From contig RQSC01001187.1 of the NCBI GenBank assembly GCA_013416795.1, positions 1 through 25,071 of the forward strand: 25,071 nt of DNA, read 5' to 3'. Every line of letters starts with the position of its first letter. Positions within the stretch are counted from its first letter, which is position 1. The notes below the pieces were generated by a model that was not told the origin of the DNA, searched no databases, and saw only the letters and a list, made by a program, of their open reading frames with translations. Below, in pieces: positions 4,858 to 19,771 of this stretch. Origin of the DNA: Prasinococcaceae sp. CCMP 1430. Lineage: Eukaryota; Plantae; Prasinodermophyta. A program made the translations under genes and the position numbers.

Positions 4858-6198
4858 ATGAAGCGGGCGCGCGAAGAGGAGGCTGGCCCCAGCGCATCGG
4901 GCGCTGGCGGGGGCGACGCGTTCGGCGGCGCGAGCGGCGCCCAGGCGGAGACGGCGCGCAAGGCGCTGCTGCTGGCCACGCAGGCCCTCGGTGTGAACGC
5001 GGCGGCCGTGCGCGCGGCGCGCGACGACCTCGACGCCCTCCTCGACGTGGTTATCGGTAGACGTCTCACCGCTGATGAGCTTTTGCGGGTGGGATCGTGC
5101 CGCGGCAAGCCCGGGCTAGTGCGGCTGGCGCTCGAGCGTGGTGCAGACATAAATGCACGTGATGGTCGCACAGGCGAGACCGCCGCGCATTTGGCCGCTG
5201 AGGGAGGCAACCCCGAGTGTCTGAAGCTGTTACTCGCGGCGGGCATCGACAAGGACGTGCGCGCCGGCTCTGGTGTACACGGCGATGGTGGTATGACCCT
5301 CTTGGTGACGGCCGCGCTGAACGGCCATGCCGACTGCGTGAAGGTGCTCCTCGAGGCGGGCGCCGACGTCGATCTGGCCAACAAATTCGGCTGGACGCCC
5401 CTGTGGCGCGCCGCTGAGCACGGGAACGCCGACTGTGTGAAGGTGCTGCTCGAGGCGGGCGCCGACACGGAGCTGGGCAACGACGCCGGCTGGACGCCCT
5501 TGTGGCGCGCCGCGAGCAAGGGGAACTCCGTCTGCCTGAAGCTCTTGCTCGAGGCGGGCGCCGAAAAGGACAAAGCTGACGAAGAAGGCTCGACCCCCTT
5601 ATTGGAAGCTTCGTATAGCGGGAACGCTGACTGCCTGGAGCTGTTGCTCGAGGCGGGCGCCGAAAAGGACAAACCTGACCCAGACGGCCGGACCCCCTTA
5701 TGGGAAGCTGCGCGTAGCGGCCATGCCGACTGCCTGAAGCTGTTGCTGGAGGCGGGCGCCGATAACGACAAACCTGACGCAGACAACCGGACCCCCTTTT
5801 GGACAGCTGCATGTCACGGCCGTGCCGACTGTATGAAGCTCTTGCTCGAGGCAGGCGTCGACATAAACCGAACCGACGATAGACGGACGCCCTTACATGT
5901 CGCAGCCGAAAGGGGACACGACGCCTGCGTCAAGCTGCTGCTGGAGGCGGGCGTGGACCCGTGCGTGCGTGATCACAAGGGCAATACTGCACTCGATTTT
6001 GCCCAGGGGAACGCGTGCTCTAGCTCGAGTGCTTCGAGTCTGAGGCGCGCGTTGAATGAGCGCGTGAATGGTGTCGATCAGTACGCCGAGGTCATCGCCG
6101 TGCTCGCGGCGGCGGGCTCGGGCAGCGGCTCGGCTGGGAGCGGCGCGGCCGGGGGGCGGCGGCGCGGCGCCAGCGCAGGCAGGCGGCGCGCGCGCTGA
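4858..6198 (+). CDS. Ankyrin-repeat protein, copy C (complete, about 9-10 repeats, intronless)
   Basis: MKRAREE start, shared helical N-terminal module, 33-aa repeats (GWTPLWRAA..GNADCVKVLLEAGAD) and a C-terminal GASAGRRRAR*. Confidence 0.92.
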   Translation: MKRAREEEAGPSASGAGGGDAFGGASGAQAETARKALLLATQALGVNAAAVRAARDDLDALLDVVIGRRLTADELLRVGSCRGKPGLVRLALERGADINARDGRTGETAAHLAAEGGNPECLKLLLAAGIDKDVRAGSGVHGDGGMTLLVTAALNGHADCVKVLLEAGADVDLANKFGWTPLWRAAEHGNADCVKVLLEAGADTELGNDAGWTPLWRAASKGNSVCLKLLLEAGAEKDKADEEGSTPLLEASYSGNADCLELLLEAGAEKDKPDPDGRTPLWEAARSGHADCLKLLLEAGADNDKPDADNRTPFWTAACHGRADCMKLLLEAGVDINRTDDRRTPLHVAAERGHDACVKLLLEAGVDPCVRDHKGNTALDFAQGNACSSSSASSLRRALNERVNGVDQYAEVIAVLAAAGSGSGSAGSGAAGGRRRGASAGRRRAR

Positions 6199-6331: not shown

Positions 6332-8480
<2,149 letters not shown>

Positions 8481-8680: not shown

Positions 8681-8706
8681 CGCTGATGCACGGAGTATTG
8701 ATCTGT

Positions 8707-8960
8707 GATGTGAGATTGCACAGTAGTATCCCGTGGGTGAGCCATCGCATATACTTCGTGTACCATAAACGGTTGCATCCGAAATGATGTGAGATTGTAC
8801 AGTACGTAGTATCCCGTGGGTGCGCCATCGCACATACTTCGTGTGCCATAAACGGTTGCATCCGAAATGATGTGAGATTGCACAGCAGTATCCCGTGGGT
8901 GAGTCATCGCATATACTTCTTGTGCCGTAAACGGTTGCATCCGAAATGATGGGAGATTCG
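8707..8960. repeat. Tandem repeat with a 79-bp unit, about 3.2 copies, AT-richer than the flanks
   Basis: Units 8707-8785 (79 bp), 8786-8868 (83 bp, 4-bp insertion), 8869-8947 (79 bp) and a partial unit from 8948. Unit 1 is GATGTGAGATTGCACAGTAGTATCCCGTGGGTGAGCCATCGCATATACTTCGTGTACCATAAACGGTTGCATCCGAAAT. Confidence 0.95.
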
Positions 8961-9464: not shown

Positions 9465-10558
9465 CTAGTACGACCTCACGTAGGGCTTGGGCACCACCCC
9501 GGCGGCGGGCGCGCTCATGCCCCTGTCCCTCTCCTCGACGGCCTGGGCGTCGAGCTGCGCCTGCCAGCGCAGGTCCTTGAGCATCCCCGCGATGGGCGGG
9601 TGGGACGGCGCGGGCGCGCCCTTGGGCGGCCTGAGCCGCCCGCCGTGGGGCAGGACGAGGCGCCCCTGCGCGCGCGGCTCGTCGCCCTGCAGCCTGGCGG
9701 CGTACAGCTTGAGCGCGCGCAGCTCCTCGCAGGTCTCCAGCTTGAGCTCGCTGAGCTCGTCCGACCACAGCATGAGCGTCTCCAGCTCCGCGCAGCACTC
9801 GAGGTCGATGCTCCGGAGGTTGCGGCACTGGACGAGCGCCTTCTTGAGGCCCGTGCACCGCGACAGGTTGAGGTGCGTGAGCGAGTCGCTCTGCACCTGG
9901 ACGAACTCGAGCGCCGGGCAGCTCCCCAGGTCAAGCCTGGACAGCGCCGGCAGCGCCGCGGCGGGCGACACCACCACGCGCGTGAGCAGCGACGCTCCCT
10001 TGAGCTCGAGCCGCTCGAGCTCGGGGGGCGCCAGCCGCACGATCTCGGCGGGGAACGAGTCCCGCATGGACGGCGAGTACGTCACCCGCACCACCTTGCA
10101 CGCCGAGAGGATGCGCTCCCTGGCAGGGCGCGCCGCCGTCGCGACACGAGTGAGCGCGAAAGTCAGGGTGCACGCGCGCGCGTGTGCGCATGCGCGTGCG
10201 CATGCGCGTGCCGGCGCGTGTGTGTGCGCGCGCGTGCGTGTGTGAGAGAGAGCGCGTGTGTGTGCCCGTCGGGTGCGGCATGGTCAGCGCGTGCGCGCAG
10301 CGGCGCGCTCGCGCTCGCGGCGGCCGCCGCTCGACGACGACGGCGCCCGCGCGGCTGCCGGGAGGGGACCGCGCGCGCTCACCTGATGGCGCCCCACGTG
10401 GGCCACAGCGCGGCATCGGGCAGCGCGTCGGGCGGCCTGTCCCAGCGCCGCGCCTGGACGGCCCCCTCCCACTGCGGGTCGTGCGGCGGCTCGGCCGGCC
10501 CCGCGGACTTCTTGCCCTTGCCGCCCTTCTTCTTGCCGCCCTTCTTCTTCTTGGCCAT
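9465..10558 (-). CDS. DRC6: Nexin-dynein regulatory complex subunit 6-like LRR protein (FBXL13/FAP169 family), 2 exons (10558-10383, 10119-9465), 276 aa
   Basis: Spliced product MAKKKKGGKKK...AEPPHDPQWE...LPDAALWPTWGAIRERILSACK...SMRDSFPAEIVRLAPPEL...LETLMLWSDELSEL...PSHPPIAGMLK matches, from memory, the motifs of Chlamydomonas DRC6 (AEPPHD, WPTWGALRERVL, LETLMLWTDEL, PSHPPIA). The phase-2 GT-AG intron has a CTGAC branch-like motif. Confidence 0.82.
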
Positions 10559-14353: not shown

Positions 14354-15502
14354 CTAGTAGAGCCCCGCGAGACACGCGTCGCACGCCGCCCTGAACGCGG
14401 CCGCCGCGTCCGCGCTCATGTCGCGCGGCGCGCTCACGCGCCCACGCTCGAAAGCGAGCGCGGCTGCGCCCGCCGCGCGCATCCTCGCCGCCCGCGCACG
14501 CACGGCGGCGACGTCGCCCCCCTCCTCCTCGAGCTTCTTGAGCTCCGCGGCGCCAGGGGTCGCGCACGGCGAGATGGGTCGCGAGCACCCCGGGCGGCCG
14601 CCCGCCTCGGCGGCGTCGAGCAGGCACCCCGCGAGCGCTTGCAGGTGCGCCTCGACGGCCTCGCGCACCTCATCGCTTTCGGCGTCGACGCCCGAGTTAG
14701 CGAGCGCGTCCGCAACCACCGCCTCGAAGTTGTCCGCCAGGCGCGCGCCGGCCTCGAGCGCGCCTCTCGCCTCGGCGTCGGCGTCGGCGGCCGGCGCGGG
14801 CACGCTCGCCCTGCCCGCCGCCAGGCCAAAGAGCTGGCGCACGACGGTGTTGTGCGTCTCCGCGTCGGCGCGCACGCGCGCGTACGCTGGCACGGAGGCC
14901 ATCGCCTCAAACCACGGCGCGCAGCGCTCGCGCAGGCCGTCGTGCGCGCGGAAGGTCGGCAGGTTGGCGACGAGGAGCGACATGGAAGGGGCCACCAGCA
15001 CGTCGGCGAGCGTCATGCCGTCGCCGCCGCACACGAAGCCGTCGGCGAAGTAGTGCTCCACCCGGTCGAGCACCGCGTCGAGCTCGTCGCGCGCGTCGTC
15101 CGCGCCACTCACGAGGTACCGATAGCCCACCGCTGTGAGCGCCCCGTCGCCTTCCACCTCCGCGCCCACGAAGGCGTCGTAGCGCTCGCGCTCCGCGCTG
15201 CCCTCCTCGGGGACCAGCCGCGGCGCGTCGGGGAAGCGCTCCTCGATCTCGCGCAGCAGCGCGTCCGACTCCCACACCAGCTTGTCGTCCGCGGCGAACC
15301 TCGCCGCGGGCACCAGCGCGGTGGGCACCATCTCCTTGTACCACTCGGGCTTGTTGCGCAGGTCGATGAACTCGGTGTCGTACGCGATCCCCTTGTGCTC
15401 GAGCGCGAGCCACACGCGCTCGCAGAAGGGGCACCAGGCGTTGGTGTCGCGGTACAGCGTAAGCGCCGGCTCGCCGCGCGAGGCGGGCGGGCGCGTGCGC
15501 AT
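14354..15502 (-). CDS. Cyanobacterial-type glutathione S-transferase-like protein with a CPFC motif and C-terminal extension; start codon uncertain
   Basis: LTLYRDTNAWCPFCERVWLALEHKGIAYDTEFIDLRNKPEWYKEMVPTALVPAARF...LVWESDALL is a thioredoxin-fold GST N-domain with a Cys motif. C-terminal APRDMSADAAAAFRAA is recalled from cyanobacterial and algal homologs. Intronless. Confidence 0.85.
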   Translation of the reverse strand: MRTRPPASRGEPALTLYRDTNAWCPFCERVWLALEHKGIAYDTEFIDLRNKPEWYKEMVPTALVPAARFAADDKLVWESDALLREIEERFPDAPRLVPEEGSAERERYDAFVGAEVEGDGALTAVGYRYLVSGADDARDELDAVLDRVEHYFADGFVCGGDGMTLADVLVAPSMSLLVANLPTFRAHDGLRERCAPWFEAMASVPAYARVRADAETHNTVVRQLFGLAAGRASVPAPAADADAEARGALEAGARLADNFEAVVADALANSGVDAESDEVREAVEAHLQALAGCLLDAAEAGGRPGCSRPISPCATPGAAELKKLEEEGGDVAAVRARAARMRAAGAAALAFERGRVSAPRDMSADAAAAFRAACDACLAGLY

Positions 15503-15572: not shown

Positions 15573-16403
15573 ATGGCCGCATCGCTCGCTGCCGCGCTGC
15601 CGTTGGCGCCGCCGCCGCTGGTGGCGCGGATGCTGCGCCCCGATGGCACGCTGGTGCGCGAGGTGCCGTTCGTGCCGTGTGCGGACGCGGCACCGGGCGA
15701 CTCAGGCGAGGGTCTGTGGACCGCGCTCGTGCCAACGACGCCGCTCGATGCGCCGGGCGCGCACGACATAGTCGTGCAAACCGCGGGCGTGCTGCGCTCC
15801 GAACCGAGGCGCGTGTCGCTGCACTCGCGGTCCTTCGGCGTGGAGCACATCTGGCTGCCCAGCGACAAGTCGGCGCTCGCCAACGGCGGCGGCGGCGCTT
15901 CGGGACCCCGCACGCGCCGCGACGAAGGCGCAGCCGTCGCTGCCTTTCTGCGACGATTCACGCCGCCGCACGGCGACGCCGGCCGCCTCGAGCCTGCGGC
16001 GCGGCCGCTGCGGCATCCGAGTCGGGCGCCCATCTCGTCCGGGTACGGCCTGCAGCGCTACTACGACGGCGTGTTTGCCGAGGGCTACTTCCACAAAGGG
16101 TACGACTACGCGGCAGGCACGGGCTGGCCGGTCGTCGCGCCGGCTAGCGGCGTCATCGCCCTCGTTGGCGCCGAGGCCGACGGGTTCGAGGTGCACGGCA
16201 ACTGCGTCGGCATCGATCACGGCGGTGGCGTGGCATCGCTGATGCTGCACCTGGACAAGGCCAGCGTGGCTGTCGGGGAGCGCGTCGAGAAGGGACAGGA
16301 GGTCGGCGAGGTTGGCGACACGGGCATTGCCACGGGGCCGCACCTGCACTGGGGGTTCTACGTTTCGGGCGAATCGGTGAACCCCGCCGACTGGCTCGAG
16401 TGA
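15573..16403 (+). CDS. M23 family zinc metallopeptidase (LytM/NlpD-like catalytic domain), cyanobacterial type; start uncertain
   Basis: ISSGYGLQRYYDGVFAEGYFHKGYD (HxxxD) ... HGNCVGIDHGGGVASLMLHL ... VGDTGIATGPHLHWG (HxH); upstream ALVPTTPLDAPG motif as recalled from cyanobacterial homologs. Confidence 0.9.
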   Translation: MAASLAAALPLAPPPLVARMLRPDGTLVREVPFVPCADAAPGDSGEGLWTALVPTTPLDAPGAHDIVVQTAGVLRSEPRRVSLHSRSFGVEHIWLPSDKSALANGGGGASGPRTRRDEGAAVAAFLRRFTPPHGDAGRLEPAARPLRHPSRAPISSGYGLQRYYDGVFAEGYFHKGYDYAAGTGWPVVAPASGVIALVGAEADGFEVHGNCVGIDHGGGVASLMLHLDKASVAVGERVEKGQEVGEVGDTGIATGPHLHWGFYVSGESVNPADWLE

Positions 16404-16598
16404 GCTCCTCGAGCGCGCGCAGGCGCGCGTCGCAGCAAAGGTAAGAGCTCAAAATCTTTGGTCGCATCCCGCCATAGGCGGTCACGCTTTATTATAGTGC
16501 AAGCGCAGGGCCACGCAAGGGCATGCCCCAGCCCCACAGGCGTACCGCAGCCGCGCGCGCGCTCGCCGAGCGCCTAGGCGTGCCGCCTCCCACGAGCC

Positions 16599-16752
16599 CT
16601 AGTAAGCTGGGTAGTTCGGCTGCGGCGGATAGTTGCTCGCAGGGTAGGGATGATGGCCAGGCGGTGGGCCTGGCGGGCCGGGAGGCATGCCAGGCGGGCC
16701 AGGCGGGCCGGGAGGCATGCCAGGCGGGCCAGGCGGGCCGGGCGGGCCGGGC

Positions 16753-16753
<1 letters not shown>
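16599..16753 (-). CDS. Possible terminal exon encoding a Pro/Gly/Tyr-rich tail, antisense to the apparent first exon of the ABC gene
   Basis: Reads [50 protein letters not shown] with mixed Pro codons. No AG acceptor is visible at its 5' edge, so the model is doubtful. Confidence 0.3.
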
Positions 16754-16810
<57 letters not shown>

Positions 16811-17171
16811 GTGTGTGTGTGTGTTCGTGTGTGTGTGCGCGCGCGTGTGTGTGTGTGTTTGAACGCATGCGCTGACGCGCACGCCCGCGCGCGCGCAAGG
16901 CGCGAGGACGCCGAGCGGCGCAGGCGCAGCCGCGGGGGAGGAGCCGAGCGACGCAGGCGCGCGCCGCTGAGGCAGCCGCTGCTCCCTGTCGCCGATGAGG
17001 ACGCCGAGGCCGCGGCAGACCTCGAGGCGGCGGCCGACGCCGACCTGGGCTCCTCCCCCGCGGAGCTCGCGGCGGCGCTCGCGCGGCACAAGCGCGACGT
17101 GCTGAGCAAGTGGCGCGCGTCGGCCGTCGAGGCGGCGCTCTTCGCGCTGTCGATGGGCTTTCAGGTGTGTG

Positions 17172-17203
<32 letters not shown>

Positions 17204-17232
17204 CGTGTGTTTATGTGGCTGTGTATGCGTCT

Positions 17233-17289
<57 letters not shown>

Positions 17290-17292
17290 TGC

Positions 17293-17347
<55 letters not shown>

Positions 17348-19771
17348 CTGACTGACGCACCTCCGGCCTCACCTCTTCGCGCTGTCGACGGTGCTCGCAG
17401 GTGCTCGCCGCGGTGAAGTGCGTGCGCTTCCACTTCGCGGCGCTCTCCGGGGGGGCGCTGCGGTGGGAGCAGGCGGTGCTCATGGCCGCGGCGGTGCCGC
17501 TGGTGGGGACGGAGACGCTGCTCGCCAGCTCGCTGCTGGAGGACCTCACGCGGCGCTCGGGCCTGCTGCGGAGGCGGCTGCACGCGCACGAGCTGCACTA
17601 CGACCCCTCGCTGGCGGGGCACGTGTGCGACCTGTGCCGCCTGCCCGTCAAGGTGTGTGTGTGTGCGTGCGTGTGCGTGTGTGTGTGTGTGTTTGTGTGT
17701 GTGCGAATACGCGCGAGGATGTGCGCGCCTGTGCGTGAGAGTGAGAGTGAGCGGATGTCTGCGAGTGTGTGCTGACTCCCCCCCCACATCCCACCCCACC
17801 CCACCCCACCCCAAGGGTGGGGTGAGCTGCAAGACGTGCGACTTCGACGTCTGCGAGACGTGCCTGCTCCGCGGCGACGCGCGCGTCGCCGAGCGGCAGC
17901 TGCGCGGCGACCGCGGCGCGCGCGAGGCGGAGGAGCTCAGCCCGCTCGCCTACCTGCGCCGCGCGCTGCGGCTGGCGTCGCGCCAGCTGCCGCTGCTGTG
18001 CCTCGCCTTTGCCATGCTCGCGGCGAGCTGCGCCACGCAGCTCTTCCTGCCCAACTACCAGGGGGGCGTCATCGACAGGGTGATACAGGCCGACCGCGCG
18101 GGCTTCGAGCGCGCCATGGTGACCTACCTGGCGATCTGCGCGAGCCAGGGCTTGGTTGGCGGCGTGCAGCGGCTCAGCTTCAACGTGGTGGGGCGCAGGA
18201 TCGCCAAGGACGTGCGCGACGCGCTCTTCGTGGGCATCGTGCAGCAGGACATCGCGTACTTCGACGGCACCACCACCGGCGACCTCGTGAGCCGGCTCAG
18301 CTCGGACGTCAACGCGATGGTGTCGCCCGTGCAGACGGTGCTCGGGTCGACCGTCTCCAACGCCGCCACGCTCGTGGGCGGGCTGGTGATGTGCTTCGTC
18401 ACCTCGTGGCGGCTCTCGATGCTCGCGTTCACGACGGTCCTCCCCGTCAGCATGGTCACGCAGCGCTACGCCAAGTGGAGCCAGCGCCTCAACCGCGAGA
18501 TCTTCTCCAAGCTCGGCGAGGCCTCCACGGTGGCCAACGACGCGCTGGGGAACATCCGCACGGTGAGGGCCTTCTCCACCGAGCCCGCCGAGATCCACAA
18601 GTACACCACCAAGACGCGCGAGGCCATGCAAAAGGGAGTGCGCGACGCGGTGGGCGGCGCGGGCTCGTACGCGCTGAATAATTACCTCGACCTCGGCGCC
18701 ATGGTGCTCATGCTGTGGTACGGCGGGGTCATCGTCATGAGCGGCGACGGCTCGCTCACGGCGGGCGGCCTCATCACCTACCAGCTCTACTGGAACATGC
18801 TGCAGTCGTCGTTCAAGTCGCTGCAGAACGTCATCACCTCCTTCACGCGCGCGGCGGGCGCCGCGCAGCGCGTGCTCAGCCTGATGGACTCCATGCCCGA
18901 CATCGACCCCGACGCCGGCGAGCCATGCGCGCAGCCCGTCCGCGCGCGCCTGGCGTTCGAGGGCGTCGAATTCGCCTACCAGATGCGCCCCGACAAGCCC
19001 GTGCTGCGCGGCGTCACGCTGGACGTGCCGTCCGGCGCGGTGGTCGCTCTGGTGGGCAAGTCGGGCGGTGGCAAGAGCACGATGGTGCACCTGGCGCTGC
19101 GCTTCTATGACCCCACGGCGGGACGCATCACCTTCGACGGCGTGGACCTCAAGCAGCTCAACCTGCGCGACGTGCACCGCTACATGGGCGTGGTGTCGCA
19201 GGAGACGCAGATCTTCGCGCAGGACATATTGTACAACGTGAGGTACGGCGTCGGCGACGACGCCGAGTACACCGATGAGGACGTTATCGCCGCGTGCAAG
19301 GCCGCCTCGGCACACGACTTCATCGTGGGGCTTGGGCCCGAGGGATACCGTACGCGCGTTGGCGAGCGCGGCGTGCGGCTGAGCGGCGGGCAGAAGCAGC
19401 GCATCGCCATCGCGCGGCTGCTGTTGAGAAAGCCGCGCATGCTGCTGCTGGACGAGGCGACGAGCGCCCTCGACGCCGAGTCGGAGGCGAGCGTGCAGGG
19501 CGCGCTCGACGCGCTGACGTCGAGCCGCAACTTCACCATTCTGCTGGTTGCGCACCGCCTATCGACGGTCATCAACGCCGACAAGATCGCCGTCGTCGAC
19601 AGCGGCTGCATCGCCGAGCAGGGCCCGCACGAGGAGCTGTTGGCGCAGGGCGGCATCTACGCGCGGCTCGTGTCCAAGCAGCTCGCCAAGCGCGCCAACC
19701 TCATCGAGGACGGCACGGGTGCGAGCGCGGGCGCGGGCACGGACGACGTGGTGGACGCGCTCGCCGAGTGA
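16687..19771 (+). CDS. ABCB/TAP-like half-size ABC transporter with an N-terminal extension containing a DC1/C1-like zinc finger; exons 16900-17164, 17401-17652, 17816-19771; first exon unresolved (about 16650/16687-16754)
   Basis: Membrane domain with [16 protein letters not shown] and [11 protein letters not shown], Walker [10 protein letters not shown], signature [13 protein letters not shown], Walker [12 protein letters not shown] and H-loop AHRLSTV. All three introns have GCTGAC branch motifs; introns 2 and 3 are phase 0. Confidence 0.92.
16754..17770 (+). repeat. Intronic (GT)n microsatellites of the ABC gene
   Basis: Tracts at about 16755-16858, 17165-17343 and 17653-17702. Confidence 0.95.

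Follow-up and report, generated by a model that had tools for sequence, protein, structure and literature searches.

How a spliceosomal intron arises inside a coding sequence, and whether the event can still be read from the DNA, is the question raised by the second intron of an ABC transporter gene in Prasinoderma coloniale, a green picoalga. The gene lies on a stretch of 25,071 nucleotides (nt), called the window below (GenBank contig RQSC01001187.1, forward strand, filed under Prasinococcaceae sp. CCMP 1430, assembly GCA_013416795.1). A preliminary description of this DNA had noted that intron 2 ends with a copy of the last 27-28 nt of the preceding exon, including the AG|GTG junction, and had taken the copy for a footprint of intron gain. 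Intron gain is a known kind of event whose traces are rarely this clear; clear cases of the origin of a new spliceosomal intron are few, and most gained introns have lost the traces of their origin. Here the footprint is supported in its core, and the mechanism is best described as an insertion with an unusually long target duplication. The features needed at the outset, in window coordinates, are:

16900 to 17164, plus strand: exon 2, in the N-terminal extension of the protein, with a firm 3′ end and a provisional 5′ end at a CAAG|G acceptor.

17138 to 17164, plus strand: R1, the upstream copy, which is the last 27 nt of exon 2, ends in CAG before the donor and encodes LFALSMGFQ.

17165 to 17400, plus strand: intron 2, 236 nt, phase 0, with donor CAG|GTGTGT and acceptor GCAG|GTG.

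17373 to 17400, plus strand: R2, the intron-terminal copy, 28 nt, which provides the acceptor AG at 17399-17400.

17401 to 17652, plus strand: exon 3, 84 codons, encoding a hydrophobic helix-like stretch and the first CxxC of a zinc-finger-like motif.

Exon 2 ends with CTCTTCGCGCTGTCGATGGGCTTTCAG|GTG (17138-17167) and intron 2 with CTCTTCGCGCTGTCGACGGTGCTCGCAG|GTG (17373-17403). An 85-nt join of the two exon ends was aligned to the end of intron 2. The 16-mer CTCTTCGCGCTGTCGA is exact at 17138-17153 and 17373-17388 (spacing 235), and in the gapped alignment of the two copies, each taken with its GTG, 27 of 31 columns match, the 16 exact positions being followed by three substitutions and one 1-nt indel; the exon-end copy first described, AG|GTG junction included, is borne out. 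R1 and R2 are equidistant from the donor and the acceptor, respectively, and thus in register with both splice sites. Excision of 17165-17400 leaves a single R followed by GTGCTC.

Outside low-complexity sequence and tandem arrays (coding repeats or satellites), R1/R2 is the sole direct repeat of at least 14 nt within 500 nt in the window. As a null, ~60,700 GT...AG pseudo-introns of 60-500 nt were taken from both strands of the window; outside arrays, no other pair matched exactly and in register over 14 or more consecutive nt. The gapped score of intron 2 was 19.5, against 6.0 ± 1.66 for AG|GT...AG pseudo-introns, and an equal score was found only for R1/R2 read on the opposite strand, in agreement with the earlier judgement that chance is unlikely for the 16-bp core. 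By our own calculation for 70% GC, any one pair of 16-mers would match with a probability of ~2.5e-9; the window as a whole would then be expected to contain ~0.03 matches, and a given intron ~2e-7 in register. That the repeat is a chance match or an artefact of assembly or polishing is extremely improbable. The region is indeed rich in GT repeats and difficult to assemble, and the genome assembly, made with long reads, was polished with short ones (PMC7455551), but chance is excluded by the null tests, the copies have a mixed, coding-like composition, carry four differences and lie outside the repeat tract, and restoration of the reading frame at a homology-confirmed junction is not what an artefact would produce.

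The junction was placed by searches in which the exons were queried one by one; the joined protein model was used in none of them. Two further features complete the part of the gene that is considered here:

17653 to 17815, plus strand: intron 3, 163 nt, consisting in order of GT repeats, CTGAC and CCCCA repeats, with no flank repeat beyond CAAGG.

17816 to 19771, plus strand: core exon, 1956 nt, 651 codons plus stop, uninterrupted, encoding the second half of the zinc-finger-like motif, the ABC transmembrane domain and the ATPase.

The core exon (17816-19768, 651 codons) is 100% identical to PRCOL_00007057-RA of P. coloniale and matches the Pfam families ABC_membrane (PF00664) at 1e-51 and, after it, ABC_tran (PF00005) at 2e-29. 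Judged by these domains, the gene is an ABCB-type half-transporter with an N-terminal extension. PF03107 or PF26235 precedes the core in many homologues, and a Pfam search with exon 3 alone gave no match. The last 19 residues of exon 2 align to residues 20-38 of the homologue P0123, and exon 3 to its residues 39-118 (64% identity, E = 8e-34). Residues 38 and 39 of P0123 are consecutive and gap-free, and the junction LSMGFQ|VLAAVKC is matched by homologues residue for residue. On these alignments (exons 2 and 3 against P0123 residues 20-118) the extension is homologous to that of relatives, and the longer gene model of the preliminary description is backed at both the end of exon 2 and the start of exon 3. 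GC by codon position in exon 2 is 0.83/0.59/0.92, a typical coding periodicity, and GC at third positions is 0.92 in exon 2, 1.0 in exon 3 and 0.96 in the core exon. The motif at the end of exon 2 is kept in more distant homologues as LSSGLQVFVGIKC, NTMLQIYVGVKC and ASALQIYSGIKC.

The two copies can be told apart as original and derivative. The LFALSMGFQ encoded by R1 is conserved in P0002 (LFVLSMAFQ), a member of the nearest lineage described below, and is recognisable in P0011, P0003 and P0008, whereas R2 is frameshifted; because R1 encodes residues conserved in homologues, R2 is the derived copy. The reverse assignment, with the intron-end copy as ancestral coding sequence once a 10-nt tandem unit is removed, was considered and rejected, since the homologues keep the residues of R1. 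Within the intron, three features bear on how R2 came to serve as its end:

17165 to 17344, plus strand: degenerate (GT)n tract, period 2, ~90 copies, 85% matches by Tandem Repeats Finder, making up most of intron 2 and lying between R1 and R2.

17348 to 17356, plus strand: CTGACTGAC, two overlapping branch-point-like CTGAC motifs, 44-52 nt upstream of the acceptor.

17390 to 17409, plus strand: 10-nt tandem pair GGTGCTCGCA / GGTGCTCGCC, spanning the acceptor, with all four R1/R2 differences in its first unit.

The acceptor of intron 2 is the first AG past the CTGAC motifs, and the boundary between R2 and the filler that separates the copies has no AG; with none between CTGAC and the acceptor, the acceptor derives only from R2. 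CTGAC is likewise found ahead of the acceptor in introns 1 and 3 and in an intron at 7476-7579. The predicted RNA structure of 17130-17420 was no more stable than that of shuffled sequences (z = -0.17), and Rfam gave no family in the window.

All four differences between R1 and R2 fall within 17389-17397, in the last 12 nt of R2, a clustering that suggests one local templated change after the duplication. In a different history, the intron is older, whatever its origin, and R2 was added later, either by partial conversion from spliced complementary DNA (cDNA), with a homologous junction towards exon 3 and an illegitimate one within the intron, or by a templated repair patch. Either route would set the last bases of exon 2 against exon 3, bringing their AG, and would produce an identical layout in which the copy adjoins exon 3 in messenger RNA register; local templated changes did occur here, as the tandem pair spanning the acceptor shows, and microsatellite introns are unstable here. 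We nevertheless regard this history as unlikely, as it calls for two events and for an earlier acceptor to have been lost, no AG being left at the boundary between filler and R2, and as the intron is lineage-specific regardless, which makes a single gain simpler.

The (GT)n tract between the copies, to which the preliminary description had also drawn attention, is present at 17165-17344. It is not diagnostic of an insertion, because other introns in the window are filled likewise: GT repeats open introns 1, 2 and 3 as well as intron 7476-7579. Variation at intron 3 points to how such sequence behaves. In the wild metagenomic variant P0135, whose exon 3 is identical and whose core differs at one of 651 residues, the reading frame stays open across intron 3 for 71 codons, i.e. 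213 nt against the 163 nt found here, and in P0133 the CCCCA repeats before the intron 3 acceptor differ again. As compared from these variants, intron length changes fast within the species. The GT repeat in intron 2 is probably secondary, and the original filler may have been much shorter than the present one.

Whether intron 2 was gained or was lost elsewhere depends on the relatives. Of the lineages represented in the protein collection, the P0002 cluster is nearest, at 78% identity; it consists of open reading frames (ORFs) of 760-794 residues on metagenome contigs from ENA/Logan (12-17 kb, up to 17,357 nt). These ORFs are uninterrupted, with LSMAFQVYAAVKC across the site of intron 2 and CRLPVANPISCMTCDF across that of intron 3; read as protein on long contigs, the P0002 lineage would be without intron 2. 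Upstream of TKWR, the ORFs of P0002, P0123 and P0128 read MWLTPPTRILFTLTLL(L)Q, a pyrimidine-rich stretch with a Gln codon last, unlike exon 2 of P. coloniale, and this stretch differs by one Leu from contig to contig. Probably it is an intron left unspliced, at a place where P. coloniale is uninterrupted. Because it looks like one, the contigs would be genomic, and intron positions would therefore turn over between this lineage and P. coloniale.

A metagenome scan with P0002 returned homologues of at most 61% identity, three of them usable as outgroups, and found no Prasinoderma-like DNA. The distant genomic homologues L004, L005 and L009/L010, which have introns elsewhere, are uninterrupted at both the Gln|Val site of intron 2 and the site of intron 3. 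The site of intron 2 is a conserved Gln-Val pair, encoded as CAG GTx in three of six homologues, i.e. a ready-made splice site. The preliminary description had proposed to check orthologous ABCB genes for absence of intron 2; such absence is indicated by the reading frames of the P0002 cluster and seen in L004, L005 and L009, and these comparisons are most simply read as a gain of intron 2 on the way to P. coloniale. The locus is informative for this reason: the copies are still 87% identical and in exact register, and the ancestral uninterrupted state is seen in relatives, at a site that was already CAG|GT.

An intron common to L005 (~880-1010) and L009 (~9860-10000) was also observed after (S/T)LQ|G, ~20 codons downstream of the Gln|Val site; it is missing from P. 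coloniale and from the P0002 lineage.

The explanation that we favour, with confidence slightly above even, is that one repair or insertion event duplicated ~27-31 bp of target, with filler DNA between the copies, and so gave rise to intron 2. A single event at the DNA level would have struck a pre-existing coding CAG|GT in the P. coloniale lineage, duplicated ~27-31 bp of the target and placed filler between the copies, giving the layout R1, filler, R2, exon 3; possible routes are fill-in synthesis at both ends of a staggered break, or some equivalent process that makes a short duplication and adds filler. The terminal AG|GT of the first copy would have become the donor and the terminal AG of the second the acceptor, with the CTGAC branch site carried in by the filler or acquired soon after, and splicing would have restored the reading frame exactly. 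R2, now intronic, would have been free to decay and changed only in its last 12 nt, while the GT repeat would have expanded later by slippage, as in other introns of the window. The single-event origin, the geometry of the break and the source of the filler are what we infer from this arrangement.

A duplication of 27-31 nt would need long overhangs or two nearby nicks. Paired-nickase work in plants has reportedly shown that nearby nicks on opposite strands are repaired to tandem duplications of tens of bp, sometimes with filler, a size that matches the 27-31 nt seen here. Unlike the present case, that is an experimental system, and no evidence of a nick pair was seen at this locus. We know of no link between such duplications and intron gain.

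Several points weigh against a single insertion event. The absence of intron 2 from the nearest lineage is deduced from uninterrupted ORFs on long contigs, and the polarity, taken from four lineages, is provisional. Splicing is predicted from sequence and homology, and the public gene model starts downstream of intron 2. The clustering of the R1/R2 differences (p ~0.04 under random placement, by our own estimate) needs an extra local event. At 27-31 bp, the duplication is far longer than those of Daphnia (4-12 bp) or of introners (3-9 bp), which implies an unusual break geometry. No filler donor was found in the window, where the non-repeat islands matched nothing but repeat-like sequence or stretches of 10-12 nt. 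Beyond the splice consensus, introns 1 and 3 of this gene have no flank repeat.

The preliminary description had named two routes to such an intron, tandem duplication of an AGGT-containing segment and insertion with target-site duplication. The second fits; the first, in its classic form, does not, since the intron interior is unlike exon 3. In the model of Rogers, an AGGT-containing exon segment is duplicated in tandem and becomes an intron (reviewed in PMC3443670). As in that model, two AG|GT exon-end copies are present here, the first supplying the donor and the second the acceptor; unlike it, a copy of the exon 3 start is undetectable, and only ~30 nt are duplicated, with unrelated DNA between. 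Had an intron-length AGGT exonic segment been duplicated, the part copied from exon 3 would have to have been overwritten by GT repeats, which we consider improbable. This is the route with the most documented cases (PMC3443670), it accounts for an intron end that copies the upstream exon end and for CAG|GTG at both junctions, and GT tracts change length fast. Yet the 208-nt interior gave a best local score against exon 3 of 10.5, as high as which 10% of control coding stretches also scored (null mean 8.7, maximum 13), and the starts of the intron and of exon 3 have only GTG in common. Moreover, R2 is identical at 27 of 31 positions, yet a sister stretch of ~208 nt, just as old, would have to have been deleted and replaced. 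Filler is favoured over duplication of a whole segment because the intron interior is unlike exon 3.

Intron 2 can be set beside other known systems of insertion. In the neointrons of Daphnia pulex, copies of the exon end at the far end of the intron mark gains at staggered breaks, with repeats of 4-12 bp (PMC4202315; reviewed in PMC3443670). Intron 2 is like these in that splicing restores the original coding sequence and the filler has no known source, and unlike them in that its repeat of 27-31 nt is outside the reported range and its interior is a GT microsatellite typical of the P. coloniale genome. Introners of Micromonas, Aureococcus, Chrysochromulina and Symbiodinium obtain splice sites from target duplications of 3-9 bp (PMC9860276). 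The likeness lies in an insert that carries the donor-side sequence, in an acceptor AG supplied by the duplicated target and in an AG|GT-like site; the duplication here is far longer and its length is not fixed, and neither a multi-copy family (within the window) nor terminal inverted repeats were detected.

That the insert is itself a copy of an introner or other transposon, and the repeat its target-site duplication, is very unlikely on balance. Several algae do have introners with one splice site of their own and the other from the target duplication (PMC9860276), and at least one further intron in the window has an exon-end/intron-end repeat. Against this, no terminal inverted repeats were found at the ends of the insert, the four introns examined have only GT repeats and CTGAC in common, the duplication exceeds every reported target duplication 3-10 times in length and differs in length from that of the other case (~14-19 nt), and no paper linking introners with Prasinoderma was found in the literature searched. 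The non-repeat parts of intron 2 (17205-17240 and 17342-17372) had no match elsewhere within the window.

The further intron with such a repeat is the following:

7476 to 7579, minus strand: comparison intron, 104 nt, with a 14-nt end, AGCCTGCCTGCCAG, that repeats the end of the exon before it, AGCCTGCCCGCCAG (7580-7593).

The preliminary description had taken intron 2 for a second, independent footprint of the process seen at 7476-7598. The architecture there is the same, but the repeat is far weaker: at 7476-7599 it matches at 13 of 14 positions and scores 11.5, close to the 99th percentile of the null. For introns 1 and 3 the scores are 7 and 5, indistinguishable from the null. A word search with exon 7580-7737 (minus strand) gave no homologue match with which to date intron 7476-7579, and one with the exon 2 part of ORF 16523-17413 likewise gave no match. 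For intron 2 the core of the proposed footprint stands, with comparative support and with R2 as a derived copy; a shared, repeated process is not established. It is doubtful, in our view, that P. coloniale has an ongoing, undescribed process that inserts GT-prone filler at CAG|GT with target duplications of ~15-30 nt supplying the acceptor. If it did, many young introns of P. coloniale would carry the duplication scar, and intron birth would be datable and open to dissection in a deep-branching green lineage.

A genome-wide excess of such scars would make P. coloniale a source of datable intron births in a 25-Mb genome, in a phylum that branches before the chlorophyte/streptophyte split; mutation-accumulation lines and wild metagenomic variants of this species already exist. 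The length of the duplication would then point to a break geometry unlike that of Daphnia and of introners. If intron 2 is a lone case, it is a tidy textbook example, together with a correction of a public gene model.

That model, PRCOL_00007057-RA (685 residues), begins at MAAAVPLV inside exon 3 and fuses ...RRRLH to GGVSCK (window 17476-17815), dropping 23 codons and with them the first CxxC of the zinc-finger-like motif. It looks wrong at its 5′ end because homologues retain the dropped stretch. The preliminary description had placed three introns in the N-terminal extension and none in the core exon. Introns 2 and 3 hold, as does the 1956-nt core exon as an uninterrupted unit; intron 1 and exon 1 are not established, the region upstream of 16755 being without codon periodicity (absent in 16523-16753). 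A stretch at 16599-16898 (minus strand) contains, at 16666-16742, 2.6 copies of a 30-nt unit and reads PGPPGPPG(M)PPG... on the minus strand, followed by a stop; clear codon periodicity was not seen on the plus strand. It may encode the C-terminus of a proline-rich protein on the minus strand or, read on the plus strand, be the putative exon 1 of the ABC gene.

Other features of the window were recorded as well. A segment of an ankyrin-repeat gene occurs twice, at 1433-2602 and 4901-6070, with 99.8% identity over 1170 bp, and the homology of the copies stops abruptly at 2602/6070, pointing to a very recent duplication or gene conversion. The copies were considered as a clock for repeat turnover and are unusable for it, as their homology ends before the repeats. 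At 8706-8958, a tandem satellite of 79-83 bp (3.2 copies, 88% matches) is flanked by GT/CA microsatellites and lies in the least GC-rich kilobase of the window (0.61). A peptidase M23-like C-terminus (HLHWGFYVSGESVNP) at 15700-16403 (plus strand) and a glutathione-S-transferase-like ORF at 14354-15400 (minus strand) are both apparently intronless; the introns in the window are concentrated in a few genes.

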